This document shows positions 30,510-40,900 of a DNA stretch of 64,000 nt, piece after piece (position 1 is the stretch's first letter; every line of letters starts with the position of its first letter). Under the pieces are notes generated by a model that saw nothing but the letters and a program-made list of their open reading frames with translations, was not told where the DNA came from and searched no databases. This stretch comes from Vitrella brassicaformis CCMP3155 (lineage: Eukaryota > Protista > Chromerida). A program made the translations under genes and the position numbers. The stretch spans positions 62,001 to 126,000 of the forward strand of contig CDMY01000297.1 of assembly GCA_001179505.1 (NCBI GenBank), read 5' to 3'.

Positions 30510-31483
30510 TCACTCACTCCTCTTCAGCTCGAATATCTCAATCTCATTCTCATCCAGCACAAGCGACTTCAGAAACTCACAGTCACGCACCGTGCCGGCC
30601 TCCGACAAGCCATGCAAGTTCGCATCAAAGAAAGTGCGTATGGTGGCCTCTGTCGCCACTCGCTTCACCAACACATCAGAGGGGAGGGAGGCGAAGAACT
30701 CTCTCTCCTTCTCGCTGTCTCGCCACATGTGGGCGAGGAGACACACAGTCTGGGGCGATAATAGCTCCAGCAATGTCTCTTTGAGGGGGCCGTGAGCATC
30801 AGAAAAGGCGAGCACGTCACAGCACAACAAAACGTCGATGCTCTTGGCACCGGACTGCCGAAGAACATTTCCCGAGTCGGCCGTCCCCCAGTGGAGGCGC
30901 TCCTCTTGCGGCATGACGGCGGGCAGCCGGCTGTCTTCGGCTGCTGGGCGCTTGACAAAGAGAGAGCGGTTGCGCTCGACATTGGAGGACAAGAAAGGAA
31001 GCACAGACTCTGAAGGGCACATACAGCACCACTCACAATAGCCCCCACGAGATGAACGACTTACCCTGGTCGGTGAGGACTACTCTGGCTCCGAGACGGG
31101 CGGCAGTCAGGCCACACAGGCCACAGCCGGCCCTACAAGCAGACACATGAGGCTGACATCCGGCAATGCATGCACACCTATCCGGCGACTCCCATCCACC
31201 CGAGTTCCACGATTGTTGCCGGGGTCGTGAAGCTCATCCTTCCCTCGTGTGCGCACTGCTCGAGGTATCTGAGGATGTTCCGCCCATTGATCGACGCATG
31301 GCCGTCTGTTTGTGCTTGATCATCTTGATGCGAACCATGCGCATGGCCAGACTTGCTGTCCGACGAGGCCCCATTTGTAGGCGCATCACGATCATTGATG
31401 GTCGTTGAGGGAGGAGGAAGCACCTCGTAAGTGAAATCCCGAATCATTGTATTTTGGGCCTCCGTGCGCACTTCTTTTGCCAT
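30510..31483 (-). CDS. Family-16 (METTL21/METTL23-like) SAM-dependent protein methyltransferase
   Basis: Spliced IVELG|AGCGLCGLTAARLGARVVLTDQ (motif I), LHWG, and IDVLLCCDVL...L.ETLLELL...LLAH..R....EFF. Confidence 0.8.
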
Positions 31484-31595: not shown

Positions 31596-32201
31596 ATGAA
31601 GCACAATTCCATAAGCATTCACGACCTGGACTGGGACGAAGACGAGGACTGTATCGGTAACGAAAGGCTCGACCACGATGAATGGCTCGGTAGATGAGTC
31701 CGTGTTGGACTGCCAGGGGGAGGATCATTCGCCCAGGTTTTCAAGGCCAAATGGGAAGATCGGATAGTCGCCGTCAAGAAGGCGAAACGGGAGTTGATAG
31801 CGCAGCTCGGAAAAGATGTACTGTCCGCATCGCACATGCCATTGGCATCGTTGGCATCCCAATCACTGCACGTGTGGATCTTTTGTCGTGCAGGGTCTAA
31901 CCGACAAAGTGATGATGGAGGCGGACATGCTGGCCCGCTTACAGCATCCACACGTCGCAAAGCTGCTGGGAGTGTGTTTCGACAAGAAGATCCCCTTCAT
32001 CGTGCTGGGTGAGTTAAGCAAGCCCGAGCACAGTTTGATGCTGTGGTGCGGTTTCAATGCAGAGTTTTATGTCGATTCACTTCGCGACTGCCTCAGAAAG
32101 CTACGCCAACGAGCAGGAGGACTCCCCGAGCACTTGCAGGATAAATACGCTAAGCAGGTGAGGCGAGGCTGCACACCCATGGCTCGGCCACTTTGCTGTT
32201 T

Positions 32202-32232
<31 letters not shown>

Positions 32233-35200
32233 CGTCAGATCTGTGAGGGTTTGATTCATGCTCACAGTCTCGGCATCGGCCATCGCGACCTCAAGCCCGA
32301 AAACATACTTGTGAGCGACAAAGAAGGCCCCGCATAAACTTGTATGTGTATCCATGTCTTATTCCTGTCTGCAGCTCGATGATGATGGCAACGTGAAGCT
32401 GTCCGACTTCGGCCTTGCTTGGGAGATGCCAGACGAAGCCACGCACAAAAGCGTTCTGGAGTTTGGTAAGAGGACGTTTCAATGCCCGTCCTTCAATCAG
32501 ATCGCAGCATGTTTGCATGAGTGAATGCAGCGGGCACTCCCATCTATGCACCTCCCGAGGCCTATGCAAAGAGTCAGCACAGCACAGCACAGGACGGACA
32601 GGCGTCTTCGTTTGTGTCTCCTCGTTTTTGCAGGGCCCAAGTTGGAGCTCAAGTCAGATATCTGGCCTGTCGGGTGCATCCTGGCAGAGATATTCGGCGG
32701 TGAGCAAGACACGCCTTCAGTCTAGCATCGAATCCATCAAGGCTGTGTCTGGCCTTTAGGTTCTGCGCCTTTTCTCAACCTCAACAAGTGGGAATTTAGA
32801 GAAATGATATACGAGAACAAAGAAGTACGCACCACCATGGATAGATCGGCGAATGTATAGGCAGGCACGTGTCTCTGTGTCGGACAGATACCTCCCGTCC
32901 CCGAGAGTGCCCCCGTCAATGTCAAACAGGCCATCCAAGTAAGACAGAGCTTTATGGTGTGAGTGCAATTCGTATGCTCGCATGGCCCGCTCCTCAGAGT
33001 TGCTTCGCCTTCAGTCCACGAGATCGCCCGACTGCAAAAGAGGTGACGTACCCTGCGTGTGTCTTTGCCTTTGTGAATATGACGCGATACACATGATACA
33101 ATCAGCTTTTGGACAAACTCAACAAGCGAGGTCGCGCAGGTGACGCCTGAAACCGACACTAAGAGAGGGACATGATCAATTCGTGTCTGGTGTGTATGTG
33201 TACCATGGCAGTGACACCCGACCCGCGATCAAGCCACGCACTCGGTGGGTGGCGCCTCCAACAAAGGGGACGATCGACGGCTTGCACGCAGCCACCTATG
33301 AGTATCTGTTCATGCAGTCACACCCTCGCCAGACCCCGTGCCCGTCTCGCCCTCAGCACCCGACACCCCACCAGCTCCACCAGAGCCAGAGATCGAACAT
33401 GTACACACATAAACAGAGGCCGTCGGATATAGGCCTCCTTACTGATATCAGGGTGACATCTTCGAGGCCGTCCAGGCCGGCGATTTGCAGTCGGTCAGGG
33501 CAATACTGAATCGAGATGGCAAGGACGTTCTGGCTTTGACAGACTACAAATCTGGCTTCGGCTTCTTCGGCGAGGTATGCGATCGTGGAGACGACAGAAA
33601 TGCACTCAGTGGTCCGTGTCTTCTCATATCTGCGCAGAGGACACCTTTCCTTGCGGCGGCTGAGAACGGTCATTTGGATGTCATGTCGCTGATGTATGAG
33701 AAGAAGCGAGACATTGTGAGTCAAAGAGTCGAGCCACACGGTGTGACTGCTCTGCTCCTGGCTGCCAAAGATGGCCGTATTGCGGTGACGGAAAAGCTGC
33801 TGGAGTGGGATCCGAAGCTGATCGACACCCCAGCAGAGGTGAGAGATGCATAATGATGCGTAAGAAAGGTGAGAGGGCACGTATCACTGCGTTGATTCCA
33901 TCGTTGGTTAAAGGGTGACCAGACAGTTCCGAGTCCATTCATCGTGGCTGCCGCGTTTGGTCACGTGGGCGTTATGACAGTTCTGTATGAGAGCAAACGT
34001 GACATACTGCAGCAAACAGACAAGGTACTTCCACAACCAAACCACCTCTGTGCTGCTAGTGGTGATGATGAGGAGATGTGTGTCGGCTTTGGTGACTGTG
34101 ATGGAATGCAATAGGATGGTTGGAATGCCTTGCACGTGGCTGTCAAGATGGGCCATGTTGCGGCGGTCAATCAGCTGCTGGAGTGGGATCCCAAGCTGAT
34201 CGATGAGCAGGACAAGGTCAGAGCACACATGTCTTCGATGCTCTATTGTGTCGATTTTCTGTGTCGATTGCAGGAAGGTAACACGCCGCTTATCCTCGCG
34301 TCCCAGGGATGTCGTGTTGACGAGCTGATCGCCATGGTTTCCAAGACAGGAAGGGACATTATCAAACAGAAGGACAATGTGAGAGGCAAAAGCTGGAGAC
34401 AAACAGACTGCCTCTCATCTGTTTGATTACCTTTCCGTGTGTCTTGCATGACACACACAAGGATGGGGACACAGCGCTTCACCATGCAGCACGCAAAGGG
34501 GATATCGCAGCTGTGGCTCAACTGTGAGGGCGGACAGACACCGATGAATGAGGTGAACATTACCTCATCTCTCTCTCGGTCTGCACTTAGGTTGGAGTGG
34601 CGCCCTGAGCTCCTTGCTGTGCGCAACACAGTAATGGAGCAAATGTGTCTGTGGCGCCTCTTTGTATGGCCTGCTGGTGGTGAGTGCATGCAGTGGGATA
34701 GAAGTGCCCTGCACGTGGCTGCCAGGAATGGCAATGCTGAAGTCGTAAATGAGTTGCTGAAGTGGGATTCCACTGTCAATCATTCCAGATTGCTCGATGC
34801 GCACGACAAGGTGACAGAACACACATTTCTTTGATGCTCTATTGTGTCAACTGTGTCTGTATCGATTGATAGTTCGGAAGGACGCCGTTCATCTGGGCTG
34901 CATTCAACGGTCATGTTGCTGCGATGAACTCCCTGTATGCCAAAGGGAAGATAGACATTCTCACGCAGCAGAGTAAGGTGACTGGAAGTCACGCAAAACG
35001 TCTCTCCTCACGCCTCTCATCTGTTTCATTGCCTTTTCTTTCTTTCTTTCCTTCTTTCTTCCTTTGGTCAGGCCACTGGCATGACGGTGAGAAATCTCAG
35101 AGAGAGAGAGATGTGTCCGACTTGTCCGATGTGGATGAGGCACACAGGCTGGATACACGGCACTACACTGGGCTTCATTTGAGGGCCATGTTGGAGCTGT

Positions 35201-37473
35201 AAAGCAGCTGTGAGAGAACAAACTAATGGTGCGAATTTTCGTCTAAATATTGCCTCCCTTTCTCTGCACTCAGATTGGAGTGGGGTCCTGAGCTGCTCGA
35301 CGCACGCTGCAACGTGACGGAGCAAATATGTCTGGAACGCCGCTTTGTGGCGACTGTGTGTGTGTGCGTGTGTGTGCGTGTGTGTGCGAATTTCAGGATG
35401 GTGGCACACCATTCATCGAGGCTGCCACCGAGGGTCATGTTGATGTGATGAAAGCTATGTATGCCGTTAAAAGGAGAAGACCTTCTTTTGCAGCAGAACT
35501 ATGTGAGAGACACACGCGGGATACAGAACACTGTTTGACTGGCTTTTCTTGTGCATGACACACAGGGTGGGTCGACGGCGCTCCATTATGCTGTATCCCA
35601 TGGTCGCTCTGAAGCTGTGGCTCAGCTGTGAGAGACACAGACGAATGACTCAAATATTATCTCGTTCATTTACTTTCTGTCCCCGTTTCCAGGCTGCAAT
35701 GGGGTGCGGAGCTCGAAATCGAAAACGAAGCGGTGACTACGTGGACACATCAAAAGGGATCAATTGTCTGGTCTATCTTGGAACAGGGCCACTGTCCGTG
35801 GGATCTCAGCGAGGGAAAGCCTGAGATTCGTGAGCTGATGAAGAAGTATAGGAGACCAGCGAAAACCGCGCCGCAGGTCAGAGCCGTATGACGCTGAGAT
35901 GCCGCCCTTCGTCAACGTGCTGTTGTGTTGACTGACCAGCCTGACATCTTCATCGCCATCAAGGCCGGCGACGTAAGGTCTGTAACTGAGATGATCACTC
36001 ACCAGGGGAAGTCGATACTCGAGAAACGAAACGGCATGGGGGTATGCAGCCTGATTACCCACTCGTTTAACAACAAGGCTTCAATCGCGTGTATCTCATT
36101 TCTGCAGTTCACGCCGTTCCTTTGGGCGATGCTTAAAGGGCAGGAAGAAAGTCGTCTTGGGCTCATGTCGGTCATGTATGAGAGCTACGGCCCGTCGCTT
36201 CTGCTACAGGCCATCACTTGGGTACAATCACAGCCATGTGAGCGAGGAGGTTTTCAATTTGTACGGCTGTGTTGGGATGCAGCTCGGAATAACTGCTTTG
36301 CACGCAGCTGCTTCTGATGGCAAGCTTGAGATGGTCAGTCAGCTGCTCAAGTGGGGCGGGGCTCCATTGCTTCATGCGCGCGACAAGGTGCGAGTTTCCG
36401 AAGACACTTGTAGTGTATTTGAAGTCTTTTCGTGTCGACTGTATCCATGTCGATTGAGGATGGAACCACGCCACTCATCGCAGCTGCCGAGGGTCACCAT
36501 GTTGAGGTCGTAAATGAGCTGCTGAAATGGGATTGCAAGTCGCTCGATGCGCAAGGCAAGGTGAGAGAGAACACACATTTTTTCGATCCTCTATTGTGTG
36601 CCTGTGTGTGTTGATTGCAGGAAGGCATGACGCCATTCATATGGGCCGCCGCGGGCGGGAGTCCCGATATGATGAAGGCCATGCATGCGATCAAAGGAGA
36701 GGACCTGCTGACACAGACGGACAACGTGAGGCACATATTTCATGACGAAGGGAGTGCGCTTTATATGCTTGACTTGTCAGGAAGGAAACGCGGCCCTGCA
36801 TCATGCTGTGATGACTGTCGGTGAAATGATTCGCAGTCCTGCAGCTGTCCTTCAGCTGTAAGAGAATGAACCATGAACACATCATCCACTCTCTCTCTCT
36901 CTCTCCCTCTCTGTGGCTCTTTCTGCTTTTCTCAGAATGGAATGGGGCGGCTCTGCTCTCCTCGACGTCAAAAACAACGATGTAAGTGCAGCCACGTCTG
37001 GGCTCCATCGATAGTTGACTAGTGCTTCTGCTGTTTATCAGGGAAGACGCCTTGGGACTTCGCTGCGGAAGATGCGGAAGCCGCCTCCTTTTCACAGAAA
37101 CAAGTCAGAGACCTCATGGACAGAGGTCTGTACGAGACACCAACATGTTTGGGCGCTAGCACATGCAGTCACATTTGTGCTGCCTTCAGTCCGGAAAGGG
37201 TACGTCATTCACCGATTTCGCTTCCCTCTGCCAAGTGCGGGTGTGCTCGGATCCTCTAAGGTGTGCCTTGCGGGCTCGTGGGATAACTGGGAGACCACAG
37301 AGGGGATGGAGTTCTCTGAAGCTGACCGCGCCTTTGTCCTTCCCCTGATACTCCCCCGCGGCAAGTATATATACAAATTCCTCGTGAACGGCAAGGACTG
37401 GTTGTGCGCCCGCACCATGCCAATCGAGAGGGACAAAAGCGGCCAGGAAAACAACGTGCTCGTGATTAGTTGA
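31596..37473 (+). CDS. Protein kinase (TKL-like) + Pro-rich linker + about 18 ankyrin repeats in two arrays + C-terminal CBM48/AMPK-beta-type glycogen-binding domain
   Basis: Kinase motifs IGGGSFAQV, VAVKK, HRDLKPEN, DFG, GTPIYAPPE, SDIWPVG, DRPT. In-frame splices link kinase to linker (RA|VTPDPRSSHAL|VTPSP), the two ankyrin arrays (TAPQ|PDIFIAIKAG) and the last exon (DR|VRKGY...VCLAGSWDNW...YKFLVNGKDW...ENNVL). Confidence 0.8.
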
Positions 37474-37982: not shown

Positions 37983-40900
37983 TCATTCGACGGATTCCTG
38001 CGATGGTTTCTCGCCTTGCTGCGGGTTGCCGTAGCTGGAGGCGACGCTGTTGCGGGTATGGGGCCGGTACAGAGACGACCCCGCGCTGTCACGCCGAACG
38101 ATGGACCCTGCACCCAAACATGTAACAGATGAGGGCCGAATGGTGGCAGGGGCGAGTTCCTGCTCCTGTCCAACGTGGCTCCTCTCACTTTGTTGTGGTA
38201 TGGGATGGATGCGCAGGTCACCCCAGCCGTCCATCTGACTCAGCCCTGACACATACACACACACACACACACACACATACCCAGAATTTGTGGCTGTGTG
38301 CGTCTCCTGTCATGTCCCATCTACCTGAAGGAGGTGCCATGACGTCGTCTGCCTTCATCCGTTCGGCCACGGGCACCAGCCGGTCCCAAAACACGTAGGA
38401 GCACACCAGCGAGAAACCAACCAGCACCACAGAGGGAATCGCCACCAGGTTGTTGACCGACGCCTCACCGGCTGCATCATATCAACACACGCAGGCACAC
38501 AACGGTGTGACGTCCTTGTGTTGTGCTTGTGCGCCGCTTTATATTACCAACGGCACCGGCGATCGAGATCATGACATTGCCAACCACACGACCAAATGTG
38601 CCTGGTGCCACCACGCGAAAACACAAGAGACCGCCATCCATCCATCCATCCATTTGATGCCCCAGCTTCACTCAGATACCAGCTTCGGTTGAAAGAAATC
38701 CGCTGTTGAATAGGCCCTTGCTCATGACCTTGGGCATCACCTTGGACAGCAGACCCATGTTGACACCCTCCAACACCTACACAAATGCAGACACACACAT
38801 ACAGATCAGTCGATTGCGCCTCTGGCTGGCCCGTCCATTCCGCCCACCTGCGCCGATATGAAGAGTGTGAATCCGCCTATCAGATACTGCACCACGGTGA
38901 AGGAGCTGCTGTTCAGCTCAAAGGTCAACGCGCTGCCTGTGCACACGAAAAGACGGCACACATACATGGGTGCCGTGTTTCGTCCACGTATGTGCCTTCC
39001 TTCTCGGTGATCGGTTCATTTTTGCTCACGAGCTTCCTTACCCAGTCCAAGAAGGAAGAGCGAGATGCTCTGGCCAACACGGTCGGGGATCATCTGAGAC
39101 AACTTGCCTGCATGACGAGGGAGAACAATGCACCGTGGTTCTCACATGTCTGTCTGTGTCTTTGTGAACGCGGCGCTCACCGACGGCCAGGTTGGTGGGC
39201 AGGACGAGCAGGCCGATGATGGCCAGCATATTGCCCACAGCTGCGTCGCCCCAGCCGAAGAAGTGCGCGGTCACGAGGGGCGCTGCCGTCTGGAAGGCCT
39301 CCTGCACCAGCTTGAGCACGAAATAAACCCACAGGCACACCACCGTGCCCGACGGGTCCATAACGGACTTGGTCGGCTGGCATGACACACACGAGAAGGA
39401 AGAGAAAGAAGAGGAAGGCGATCTTTTGCGGCTCCTGGCTGTCCATCCATCCATGCATCCATCTATGCGTACATCTTTGAGAGATCTAAATGAAGATGAT
39501 GCTGCTGGCATGCCGTCCTCAATGGTCTCGTCGCCCTCCTCAATCGCAAGCAGCGGCTCCAACAGGTCATTATCACGGCTGCAGAACCACAGGTCACACA
39601 CACACACACACACACACCGAGAGAGAGAGAGAGACAGCCAGCCGGTTGCTGTGTGCACTTGGTTGGTCGTCATATATACCTTTTTGCGTATTTCCTGATG
39701 GGCTCAGTGAATGCCAGCCACGTCATGAAGAAGAATATGAACCAAAGGATGGCCATGATCCAGCCGGGGGCCGTCAGGGGATTCACAGGCAGACCAAACA
39801 CCTGCAATACGCATAGACGCACGGAACGGGGATGTGCGCACACGCCGTTAGCTGACCGAGAAGTTGATCATGTTGAGCAACGTCTGGCTGCCGGGCCCGA
39901 CGGTCATCCCCAGTGACCCCACGGCGACAAATATCGCCGACTGGAAGGTCTTCTGGTCGATCGTCACGAAATCCGCTATGTACCGACGGTTCACCGCCCG
40001 ATTCCCGCCAAGACCCACAATCAGACGGGCTGCACACAGCCACAAGACACATACACATAGACATAGACATAGACATATGCAGACAGGAGATGTAGATGAG
40101 CACAGGTGGCTGGCTGACGTGGCTTACCCAGGAAAAGCAGTGCAGGGCTGCCGAACGGCAAGGCCAGAGCGTAGAGGAGGTTGCCGAGCACTAGGATGAT
40201 TGTGCAGAAGACGAGCGGCTGCTTGAAGCTGCGGTTGGACCAGAGTGAGTAAATGACGGACGACAGCAGGGACGAGAGGGGCGTCATGGCGAGCAGCAGA
40301 CCCGACAGTGTGGCCCACATGCCGAGAGCGCTGGCGTACTCGTTGGCCGTGGGAATCACCACGTAGTAGTTGGCCATGTATAGAAACGTGTTGTAGTGAT
40401 TCAGAAACAAACTGACCACCACACACACACGTATGCACAAGCGTCGTCGGTCTTCCGATCTGTGTCCTCTCCCTCCCTGGCTCACCCGAATGCATCAGCC
40501 GCGCCGACGGGCTCGGCCTCATAGTCGATCTGCGCCTGGCCCGCCAGTGTGCTGTAGAACTTGGCCTTCCTGGCGGTGCGCATGGCTCGGCGCTGGAAGG
40601 TCAGCAACAGCTCCTCGGTGTGCTTGCGCTCGATGAGGTGGCCCTCGCCGTCCACAATGGGCTCTGTCGTGCGGCCGTGCAGCTCGTTGACCTGGTGCCT
40701 GGTGATCTTGCCCTCCCGCAGCCACTGGTCCTCCTTCTCACGCATTGAGCTGAACATGGCCTGGAGCTCACCCCACAGGCGGGGGATGTTGGGCGACAGC
40801 CGCAGGTCGTCCAGACGAGAGGCGGTGTTGTCGGGTCTCAGACGCTGGCGCACGAAGTCTCTCAGGAGCCCCTCGCCAGTCGTGCCACGGTATATGAAGC

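Follow-up and report, generated by a model that had tools for sequence, protein, structure and literature searches.

A kinase-ankyrin-CBM48 arrangement with a twice-broken reading frame in the chromerid Vitrella brassicaformis

On the plus strand of the Vitrella brassicaformis CCMP3155 DNA analysed here (a window of 64,000 nucleotides), positions 31596-37473 contain a protein kinase, a Pro-rich linker, two ankyrin arrays and a C-terminal CBM48, and this lineage-specific juxtaposition of domains, present in DNA and apparently in mRNA, has probably been disabled recently. The three-part arrangement put forward in a preliminary description is real in the DNA and probably in one mRNA and is unique within the genome, but it has no continuous open reading frame, and the main transcript probably does not yield the three-part protein. 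No description of such a kinase-ankyrin-CBM48 arrangement was found in the literature. In myzozoans (chromerids, dinoflagellates and apicomplexans), which store starch in the cytosol, the regulation of starch turnover is only partly known. A kinase equipped with a starch-binding module would be a direct candidate for such a regulator; because the fused frame is broken twice, the fused candidate is not to be taken at face value.

Gene model and domains

Domains were called by Pfam profile searches on stop-free pieces, and junctions were taken from a GT-AG model and conceptual translation. The gene model comprises 37 exons, all GT-AG, separated by introns of 42-178 nt (Table 1). Its 5' limit is set by a Methyltransf_16 gene, a minus-strand ORF with its ATG at 31483 that lies head to head with the kinase gene; further in-frame ATGs are located upstream of 31596, at 31482 and 31518. 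The GT-AG exons, the short introns and the minus-strand neighbours as bounds argue for a single transcription unit, a view that we hold with moderate confidence, jointly with the explanation of the locus as a whole given below.

Table 1. Features of the kinase-ankyrin-CBM48 locus and loci of its paralogs
Feature	Position	Strand	Evidence
Methyltransf_16 (lysine methyltransferase-like) gene	30513-31483	-	Pfam PF10294, E 1.3e-5, on 30513-31022
Protein kinase, exons 1-12	31596-33139	+	Pfam Pkinase on pieces, GT-AG model, conceptual translation
Kinase exons 1-6	31596-31656, 31699-31817, 31894-32008, 32063-32157, 32239-32310, 32375-32465	+	model
Kinase exons 7-12	32531-32572, 32634-32699, 32760-32824, 32888-32938, 32998-33042, 33106-33139	+	model
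Pro-rich linker, exon 13 (VTPSPDPVPVSPSAPDTPPAPPEPEIEH)	33318-33400	+	direct reading; model
Ankyrin module A, exons 14-28, ~13 repeats	33452-35876	+	Pfam Ank families, frame-by-frame reading, model
Lesion 1: one extra A, gttAAAAgga, in exon 25	35466-35475	+	alignment with sister exons
Ankyrin module B, exons 29-35, ~6-7 repeats	35940-36981	+	Pfam Ank; reading
Intron 35 and lesion 2	36982-37043	+	transcript-derived ORF P0151; paralog comparison
Ankyrin C-cap exon 36, KTPWDFAAEDAEAASFSQKQVRDLMDR in CBM frame	37042-37125	+	P0151; paralog caps GKTPWDKVPDWKPEIREIMEKYKR*
CBM48 (AMPK1_CBM) exon, stop codon 37471-37473	37190-37473	+	Pfam PF16561; P0001, P0151
Paralogs on C429	43897-41340; 48882-46053		tblastn
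Paralogs on C374	32412-29885; 37007-39894		tblastn
Paralogs on C249	121243-119096; 118034-116279		tblastn

Pkinase (PF00069) matched the pieces 31801-32334 (E 1.8e-12) and 32315-32521, one piece reaching 47.6 bits against a cut-off of 31.7. In the conceptual translation GGGSFA, VAVK, the alpha-C Glu (MMEAD), HRDLKPEN, DFG, APPE, DIWPVG and RDRP were found, that is, the Gly-loop, VAIK Lys, alpha-C Glu, HRD, DFG, APE and subdomain XI Arg of a eukaryotic protein kinase, in agreement with the catalytically intact motifs reported earlier. The kinase leaves exon 12 in phase 1 at 33139 and is connected with the first ankyrin exon by exon 13, the Pro-rich linker that had already been noticed. The intron proposed at 33139-33210 fails, however, as the linker stays in frame only with the acceptor at 33316-33317, which gives an intron 12 of 178 nt (33140-33317) with a TGA at 33146-33148 if retained. 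Through the linker exon the kinase-to-ankyrin join is an in-frame GT-AG junction, and kinase and ankyrins lie in this order in one polypeptide, the literal ORF comprising the kinase and about 10.5 repeats.

Ank, Ank_2 and Ank_3 scored above the Pfam cut-offs on several pieces from 33446 to 36821, and the repeated 33-residue motif (PF00023/PF12796) occurs about 20 times in the model. Both of the ankyrin arrays claimed before, with about 12 plus 6 repeats, are present, and the counts obtained here (about 13 plus 7) are near those numbers. Module A runs from the N-cap GDIFEAVQAGDLQSV to the C-cap GHCPWDLSEGKPEIRELMKKY, and module B opens with a second N-cap, PDIFIAIKAGDVRSV. The sequence of its last exon, exon 35 (36936-36981), is (L)MEWGGSALLDVKNND; this exon ends in phase 0, as do the homologous last ankyrin exons of the paralogs (LEWGGGALLDIKNND/K). 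Between the modules an intron had been suggested near 35870-35941; it is there, although its limits in the model are 35877-35939 (intron 28, 63 nt), and on retention TGA 35889 would be in frame.

A tandemly expanded family of kinase-ankyrin genes

At least six kinase-linker-ankyrin-cap paralogs are present elsewhere in the Vitrella brassicaformis CCMP3155 genome. Identity with these paralogs in tblastn is 26-79% across the kinase exons; in the catalytic-loop exon the three closest loci reach 85-87%. Exon order, linker position between kinase and ankyrin, ankyrin type and cap exon are the same as in the CBM48-bearing gene. However, the paralogs possess one ankyrin module, have a matched span of about 1.8-2.9 kb and reach a stop straight after the cap (..IREIMEKYKR*), whereas the CBM48-bearing gene combines two ankyrin modules with a CBM48 exon and carries two frame lesions; CBM48 was found in none of the kinase-ankyrin paralogs. 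In addition, contig C705 carries an ankyrin-only copy with a homologous linker ahead of its array. Vitrella thus has a tandemly expanded kinase-ankyrin gene family that was previously unremarked, and the arrangement studied here did not arise from nothing: its kinase-ankyrin part belongs to this local family, one copy of which gained a 3' CBM48 exon.

The paralogs also bear on whether the locus might consist of two or three separate genes, namely a kinase ending at TGA 33146 and/or a kinase plus module A ending at TGA 35889, followed by an ankyrin-CBM48 gene, the fusion being a read-through of intergenic DNA. Such in-frame stops do follow when intron 12 or intron 28 is retained, the paralogs end right behind the first cap, and the copy on C705 is ankyrin-only. 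On the other hand, the two gaps measure just 178 nt and 63 nt and have good GT-AG sites with compatible phases, the Pro-linker exon and the first exons of modules A and B begin without a start codon, and P0151 ties exons 34-37 into one spliced mRNA. As the six paralogs are colinear, with kinase, linker and ankyrins in the same order and orientation, kinase plus ankyrin is one gene, and separate genes appear very unlikely.

Two one-base lesions interrupt the frame

The earlier statement that every junction checked splices in frame does not hold at two places. Exon 25 (35397-35502) comprises 106 nt compared to 105 nt in each of the three aligned sister exons 18, 22 and 33, and the alignment gap falls at the A-run. 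This one-base insertion shifts the frame from ..MKAMYAV to KGEDLLLQQNY, and because of it the literal ORF from ATG 31596 halts after 719 aa at TGA 35610-35612. Lesion 1 is read from the assembly, transcript evidence being limited to the 3' exons; a homopolymer miscall is unlikely since the assembly is Illumina-only and was corrected in three rounds of iCORN. An internal donor at 35445 (score 6.6) in combination with exon 26 would skip the lesion in frame.

The second break is seen in the transcript-derived ORF P0151, which probably shares one transcriptome source with P0001, so that the transcript evidence is effectively single. P0151 is 135 aa long, exactly as predicted from the model cDNA, and maps to 36942-36980, with a W across 36981/37042, and then to 37044-37124, indicating that exons 34, 35, 36 and 37 are contained in one spliced mRNA; the link between kinase and ankyrins is given by the architecture of the paralogs. 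Its first 13 residues correspond to exon 35 in a non-ankyrin frame and are followed by the cap and CBM48. Intron 35 (36982-37041) is therefore transcript-proven, and at the junction 36981/37042 the cap-plus-CBM48 frame is one base off the ankyrin frame. The cap acceptor reads cAG/GGAAG here and cAG/GGGAAG in five out of five paralogs, and it is this loss of one G from the first cap codon that places CBM48 out of the ankyrin frame in the observed transcript. Translated literally in the ankyrin frame, exon 36 gives GRRLGTSLRKMRK.. and runs on to TGA 37346-37348. With one nucleotide gained in exon 25 and one lost in the cap exon, the mature mRNA has no uninterrupted frame from kinase to CBM48.

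A working kinase-ankyrin-CBM48 protein, docked on starch granules by its CBM48, might still be made if lesion 1 were an artefact, allelic or spliced out (35445) and if lesion 2 were bypassed, either by the +4 donor GT 36986 (..NNDV-R-KTPWD..) or by the +5 acceptor AG 37045-46 (..NND-TPWD..). It is consistent with this that every kinase motif is intact, that the CBM48 ligand residues are conserved, that the cap and CBM48 ORFs are intact and mutually in frame, that stops and splice-site losses are absent past the lesions and that alternative in-frame sites exist. However, two independent rescues are needed, use of the internal donor would remove the second helix of an ankyrin repeat, a miscall in the A4 run is improbable in an iCORN-corrected Illumina assembly, and the transcript-derived ORF displays the out-of-frame junction. 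Moreover, the frame-restoring sites score only 2.1 (GT 36986), 2.7 (AG 37045-46) and 0.8 (AG 37021-22), compared to 8.2 and 8.5 for the donor and acceptor used. Continued production of a working protein is therefore considered unlikely. As the two GT donors at the end of exon 35 are arranged in tandem 4 nt apart (GTAAGTGCAG), a minor isoform that is in frame across lesion 2 is possible if both are usable, and the strain might harbor an intact second allele unseen in the assembly.

The 413 codons downstream show neither stop codons nor lost splice sites in conceptual translation, suggesting that the damage is recent. Intact downstream ORFs including all CBM48 hallmark residues would also be compatible with continued selection.

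The CBM48 exon

AMPK1_CBM (PF16561) matched 37015-37470 with an E-value of 1.4e-14 and 54.4 bits against a cut-off of 26.8, and PDB matches of the exon were LSF1 and the AMPK beta1 and beta2 CBMs. In the alignment, GSWDNW, YKF and GKDW..NN fall in register with the four ligand-binding positions (W, K, W and N) in CBMs of AMPK beta, and the predicted glucan-contacting Trp, Lys, Trp and Asn are thus present, the sugar contacts being those of the AMPK beta1 CBM structure. A CBM48 with both Trp motifs and a terminal NN, as first noticed, is thereby corroborated. For the intron ahead of it, formerly placed at 37126-37190, two spliced ORFs (P0151 and P0001) give proof; its exact limits are 37126-37189, and its removal joins cap exon and CBM48 exon within a G/TC codon for Val. 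Other CBM48 exons of the Vitrella brassicaformis genome are 37-47% identical, and within 10 kb upstream of those loci a kinase or ankyrin of this type is absent. Behind the CBM the alpha/gamma-binding domain AMPKBI was not found, the stop codon following directly with no further domain on the piece, and identification as an AMPK beta subunit was rejected.

CBM48 might also be made alone, as a protein of about 135 residues (the P0151 ORF, with a short out-of-frame leader, cap helix and CBM48), if translation began inside the long mRNA or if there were a shorter 3' transcript. TransDecoder classed this ORF as 'complete', and a 97-aa version was called on a transcript contig of 2638 nt, but an ORF caller will report any frame that stays open for 100 codons. 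In addition, ATG 36942 follows many upstream ATGs, among them 36937 in the ankyrin frame 5 nt earlier, there is no promoter evidence, and a search of 5.8 billion clusters gave no related short protein in the size range of 74-236 residues. Translation of CBM48 on its own is judged extremely improbable.

Proposed origin and decay of the fusion

Taken as a whole, a kinase-ankyrin-CBM48 gene whose frame was broken by two indels is, with moderate confidence, the best explanation of the locus. A family of RIPK-like kinases with a Pro-rich linker and an ankyrin array ending in a 'GKTPWD...' cap would have expanded locally, and one copy may have gained a second ankyrin module by duplication of a unit reaching from N-cap to C-cap. 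In this copy a splice donor would also have taken the place of the stop codon behind the last cap, joining the CBM48 exon in a fusion that was presumably once in frame. Because the alpha-glucan-binding residues known from AMPK beta and from plant starch phosphatases are retained in the CBM48, the ancestral product would plausibly have tethered a kinase and ankyrin platform to cytosolic starch. In the sequenced strain, one-base indels (+A in exon 25, -G in the first cap codon) break the frame twice. The product encoded by the main mRNA would be a kinase of 719 residues that includes about 10.5 ankyrin repeats, and even with lesion 1 bypassed the ankyrin frame would pass into about 80 out-of-frame residues and CBM48 would never be read. 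Most likely, the full polypeptide is no longer made or arises from rare splice variants only. The working granule-targeted kinase originally envisaged is undermined, since it rests on a continuous ORF that the +1 nt and -1 nt changes break.

Were both breaks bypassed, by rare or regulated alternative splicing or by an intact second allele, the result would be an RIPK-like kinase that is anchored to starch granules and bears an ankyrin platform of 20 repeats, which we regard as quite unlikely. Signalling would in that event be wired to storage polysaccharide independently of AMPK beta and of Toxoplasma CDPK2, and the choice between donors 4 nt apart could switch between forms with and without CBM48. 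What stays useful is the tandemly expanded Vitrella kinase-ankyrin family, together with what appears from the sequence to be an example of domain gain by conversion of a stop codon to a splice donor, followed by decay.

Comparison with known systems

In Toxoplasma, amylopectin is controlled by CDPK2, a kinase that carries a CBM20. The idea of a kinase combined with a starch-binding module is shared, in a starch-storing relative of the apicomplexans, but CDPK2 is an EF-hand CDPK with its CBM20 at the N-terminus, whereas the Vitrella gene has a C-terminal CBM48 and a kinase of another group. Since Pfam found no CBM_20 and no EF-hand on any piece, a CDPK2-like starch-regulating kinase was rejected.

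With the AMPK beta CBM (PDB 1z0m, 4y0g) and LSF1 (8j5d), about 70 residues including W, K, W and N can be aligned. In contrast to AMPK beta and to the plant starch proteins LSF1/SEX4, the Vitrella module is accompanied neither by a subunit-interaction domain nor by a phosphatase domain and lies out of frame in the mRNA.

The animal TKL kinases RIPK4 and ANKK1 have an ankyrin array at the C-terminus and no carbohydrate-binding module. The Vitrella gene shares with them a Ser/Thr kinase at the N-terminus and, behind it, a long array of C-terminal ankyrin repeats, and the top PDB matches of its kinase piece, a partial one, were RIPK1 kinase domains (E 1.2e-7), with CDPK and CaMK close behind. Unlike those of RIPK4 and ANKK1, however, the Vitrella ankyrins belong to an alternating type that is specific to the family and has 'LLEWDPKLID' loops, and the gene belongs to a Vitrella-specific tandem family.

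Domain content and gene model

Stop-free pieces of the + strand of the gene region were scanned against Pfam, and the three parts that a preliminary description had proposed, kinase, ankyrin arrays and AMPK-beta-type CBM48, were all recovered within 31801-37470. Pkinase matched at 31801-32334 (E 1.8e-12) and also at 32315-32521, ankyrin families matched many pieces from 33446 to 36821, and AMPK1_CBM (PF16561) matched 37015-37470 with an E value of 1.4e-14 and a score of 54.4 bits (cut-off 26.8). Among solved structures, RIPK1 kinase domains were the best match of the kinase piece, and the CBM exon was matched by Arabidopsis LSF1 and by the CBMs of AMPK beta1 and beta2, with nW, YKF, W and NN in register. 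Direct reading of the three frames, with splice sites checked by script, gave a model of 37 exons with GT-AG introns of 42-178 nt, so that gaps between coding exons do not exceed 178 nt across the gene. The linker would fall out of frame with the intron first placed at 33139-33210; use of the acceptor at 33316-33317 preserves its frame. (TG)n microsatellites lie within introns 4 and 24 (window 32190-32235 and 35350-35390), introns 22 and 34 hold (CT)n and (CTTT)n tracts, and readthrough of these tracts accounts for the 'CVCVCV' noise among open reading frames.

Features of the kinase-linker-ankyrin-CBM48 gene, with transcript mapping and splice-site scores (window positions)
Feature	Position	Strand	Remarks
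Kinase, exons 1-12	31596-33139	+	GGGSFA, VAVK, HRDLKPEN, DFG, APPE, RDRP encoded
Pro-rich linker, exon 13	33318-33400	+	
Ankyrin module A, exons 14-28	33452-35876	+	~13 repeats; N-cap GDIFEAVQAGD, C-cap GHCPWDLSEGKPEIRELMKKY
Ankyrin module B, exons 29-35	35940-36981	+	second N-cap at its start, PDIFIAIKAGD
Second C-cap, exon 36	37042-37125	+	KTPWDFAAED...VRDLMDR
CBM48 and stop codon, exon 37	37190-37473	+	
P0151 (135-aa transcript ORF)	36942-36980; 37044-37124; 37192-37470		Trp over 36981/37042; Val over 37125/37190
Donor	36982		observed in transcript; score 8.2
Acceptor	37041		observed in transcript; score 8.5
Donor	36986		frame-restoring; score 2.1
Acceptor	37045-46		frame-restoring; score 2.7
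Acceptor	37021-22		frame-restoring; score 0.8
Internal donor	35445		bypass of extra A in exon 25; score 6.6

Upstream, at window 30513-31483, a Methyltransf_16 (lysine methyltransferase-like) gene on the minus strand adjoins the kinase gene in head-to-head orientation. About 110 nt separate its putative ATG (31483) from that of the kinase (31596), a spacing that suggests a very short bidirectional promoter shared by the two genes. Of the ORFs tested downstream, the sole Pfam-recognisable piece was Sugar_tr-like (MFS sugar transporter; 40024-40485, minus strand), a weak match below the cut-off (E 0.0024).

The CBM48 exon is transcribed with the ankyrin exons

In a search of 1.84 billion cluster representatives, the sole 100% match to the CBM exon was P0001, a transcript-derived ORF of 97 aa. 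The same cluster contains P0151, a 135-aa ORF that TransDecoder called 'complete' on an MMETSP transcript, and both map to this locus as its spliced products. The literal model cDNA predicts exactly the 135-aa ORF of P0151, and from this match in length intron 34 must be spliced out too; judging from the start and length of P0151, exon 34 is apparently present in the observed transcript. At the mRNA level, the CBM48 belongs to the predicted kinase-ankyrin gene. A word-index search with residues 14-135 of P0151 matched P0001 alone. An annotated full-length protein was not among the matches of the CBM exon in the representative search; as other Vitrella CBM48 genes likewise had no counterpart among those matches, no conclusion was drawn from this.

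Two one-base indels break the reading frame

It had been proposed that the junctions splice in frame, and this did not hold: an extra A in exon 25 and a missing G in the cap exon, exon 36, break the frame. Exon 25 has 106 nt and its sister exons 18, 22 and 33 have 105 nt each; the extra base aligns to the run gttAAAAgga at 35466-35475, and translation of the exon yields ..GHVDVMKAMYAV and, one frame on, KGEDLLLQQNY. The literal ORF from the ATG at 31596 thus ends at the TGA at 35610-35612 after 719 residues. At the second site, the last ankyrin exon ends with ..LLDVKNND in phase 0, as in the paralogs, and the KTPWD reading needs entry into the cap exon in phase 1. All five paralog cap exons examined have the acceptor cAG followed by GGG(A/C)AGAC.CC.TGGGA, and in this gene cAG is followed by GGAAGACGCCTTGGGA, with one G fewer.

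Because the two indels are opposite in sign, the literal cDNA has the kinase ATG and the CBM48 in a common frame; the stretch of 876 nt from one indel to the other is out of frame there, and a stop is reached 26 codons in. Residues 1-13 of P0151 are exon 35 translated outside the ankyrin frame; the ankyrin frame of that transcript therefore enters GRRLGTSLRK... and stops at 37346-37348, leaving the CBM48 unread.

An assembly error at the A-run is judged unlikely, because the assembly (72,700,666 bases in 1064 contigs; PMC4501334) was made from Illumina HiSeq reads only, which were SGA-corrected and Velvet-assembled with three rounds of iCORN polishing. Programmed frameshifting at AAA-AGG (+1) and at C-AAA-AAC (-1) was considered and found unsupported, and both sites are accounted for by ordinary indels when compared with the paralogs. 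Rescue by splicing was assessed with position weight matrices built from the gene's other introns, and the observed and frame-restoring sites are compared in the table. Joining the internal donor at 35445 to exon 26 would bypass the extra A at the loss of half an ankyrin repeat. Skipping of exons 26-35 would give an in-frame product, yet the observed transcript holds exon 35 and apparently exon 34.

Paralogs and other CBM48 genes

Paralogs were sought in the Vitrella brassicaformis CCMP3155 genome with the catalytic-loop exon and the ankyrin N-cap exon, followed by tblastn of model segments. The catalytic-loop exon had 30 genome matches with E<1e-3, including 8 on contig C374, and six colinear kinase-linker-ankyrin-cap units were found, two each on C429, C374 and C249. 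In two paralogs read base by base and in an ankyrin-only copy on C705, the frame ends directly after the cap (e.g. ..GKTPWDKVPDWKPEIREIMEKYKR*). Given the six colinear units, the stop after the cap in the copies read, and the small exon gaps and minus-strand neighbours of the gene studied here, kinase plus ankyrin is, as predicted from the genomic sequence, a conserved single-gene architecture in this genome. The RIPK-like kinase family is tandemly expanded on C374 (~5.6-80.7 kb), C249 (~31.9-121.2 kb), C429 (41.3-48.9 kb), C563 and C549, and many members carry, after the kinase, a Pro-rich linker, then an ankyrin array and the conserved cap 'GKTPWD..IREIMEKYKR*'. The ankyrin-only copy (L021; C705:5683-4112, minus strand) has a linker-like first exon with a SET-like gene upstream instead of a kinase, and a second, apparently duplicated cap exon about 150 nt past its stop codon; another family kinase begins at 1593 on this contig.

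The genome contains at least nine strong CBM48 exons, 37-47% identical to that of this gene. None of the others has this type of kinase or ankyrin within 10 kb upstream, and no contig carrying a family paralog figures among the CBM48 matches listed. Six of the strong exons are on C718, where a cluster at 52-243 kb (L001-L006, L011-L015) comprises six or more exons of the AMPK1_CBM type that show 39-47% identity to the CBM48 of this gene, some spaced only about 800 nt (96939, 97763). The 160 closest CBM48 relatives fetched, mostly bacterial multi-CBM48 amylases/pullulanases and red-algal multi-CBM48 proteins, included none with a kinase or ankyrin detectable by this gene's segments. The closest eukaryotic relatives in the collection searched are red-algal (Rhodosorus, Erythrolobus; P0039, P0056, P0085), with 386-525 residues and three CBM48 in tandem; many bacterial proteins have about 480 residues and four CBM48. 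Metagenome contigs, a set that may leave out relatives of this genome, were scanned by exact 30-mers and protein-guided search for the transcript contig of P0001 and matched only at distant bacterial CBM48 loci; the ESM Atlas matched only at bacterial stand-alone CBM48 clusters. In literature on the CBM48-ankyrin-kinase combination, Vitrella amylopectin and the Vitrella kinome, the arrangement was not found described, and neither kinase nor ankyrin is mentioned in a preprint of 2026 on starch pathways in myzozoans.

Proposed gain and decay of the fusion

The most economical reading of this gene is a history of gain and then decay in four steps. One family member would have acquired a second ankyrin module; conversion of its stop codon into a splice donor would then have added the CBM48 exon; the fusion would at some time have been in frame, because cap and CBM48 are still mutually in frame and stop-free; and the two one-base indels would have been picked up since. 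That a functional granule-targeted fusion is nevertheless made, solely via minor isoforms or from an unseen allele, seems improbable to us. Following this proposed gain and decay, the main product would now consist of a kinase and some 10.5 ankyrin repeats, in broad terms similar to the single-module paralogs.
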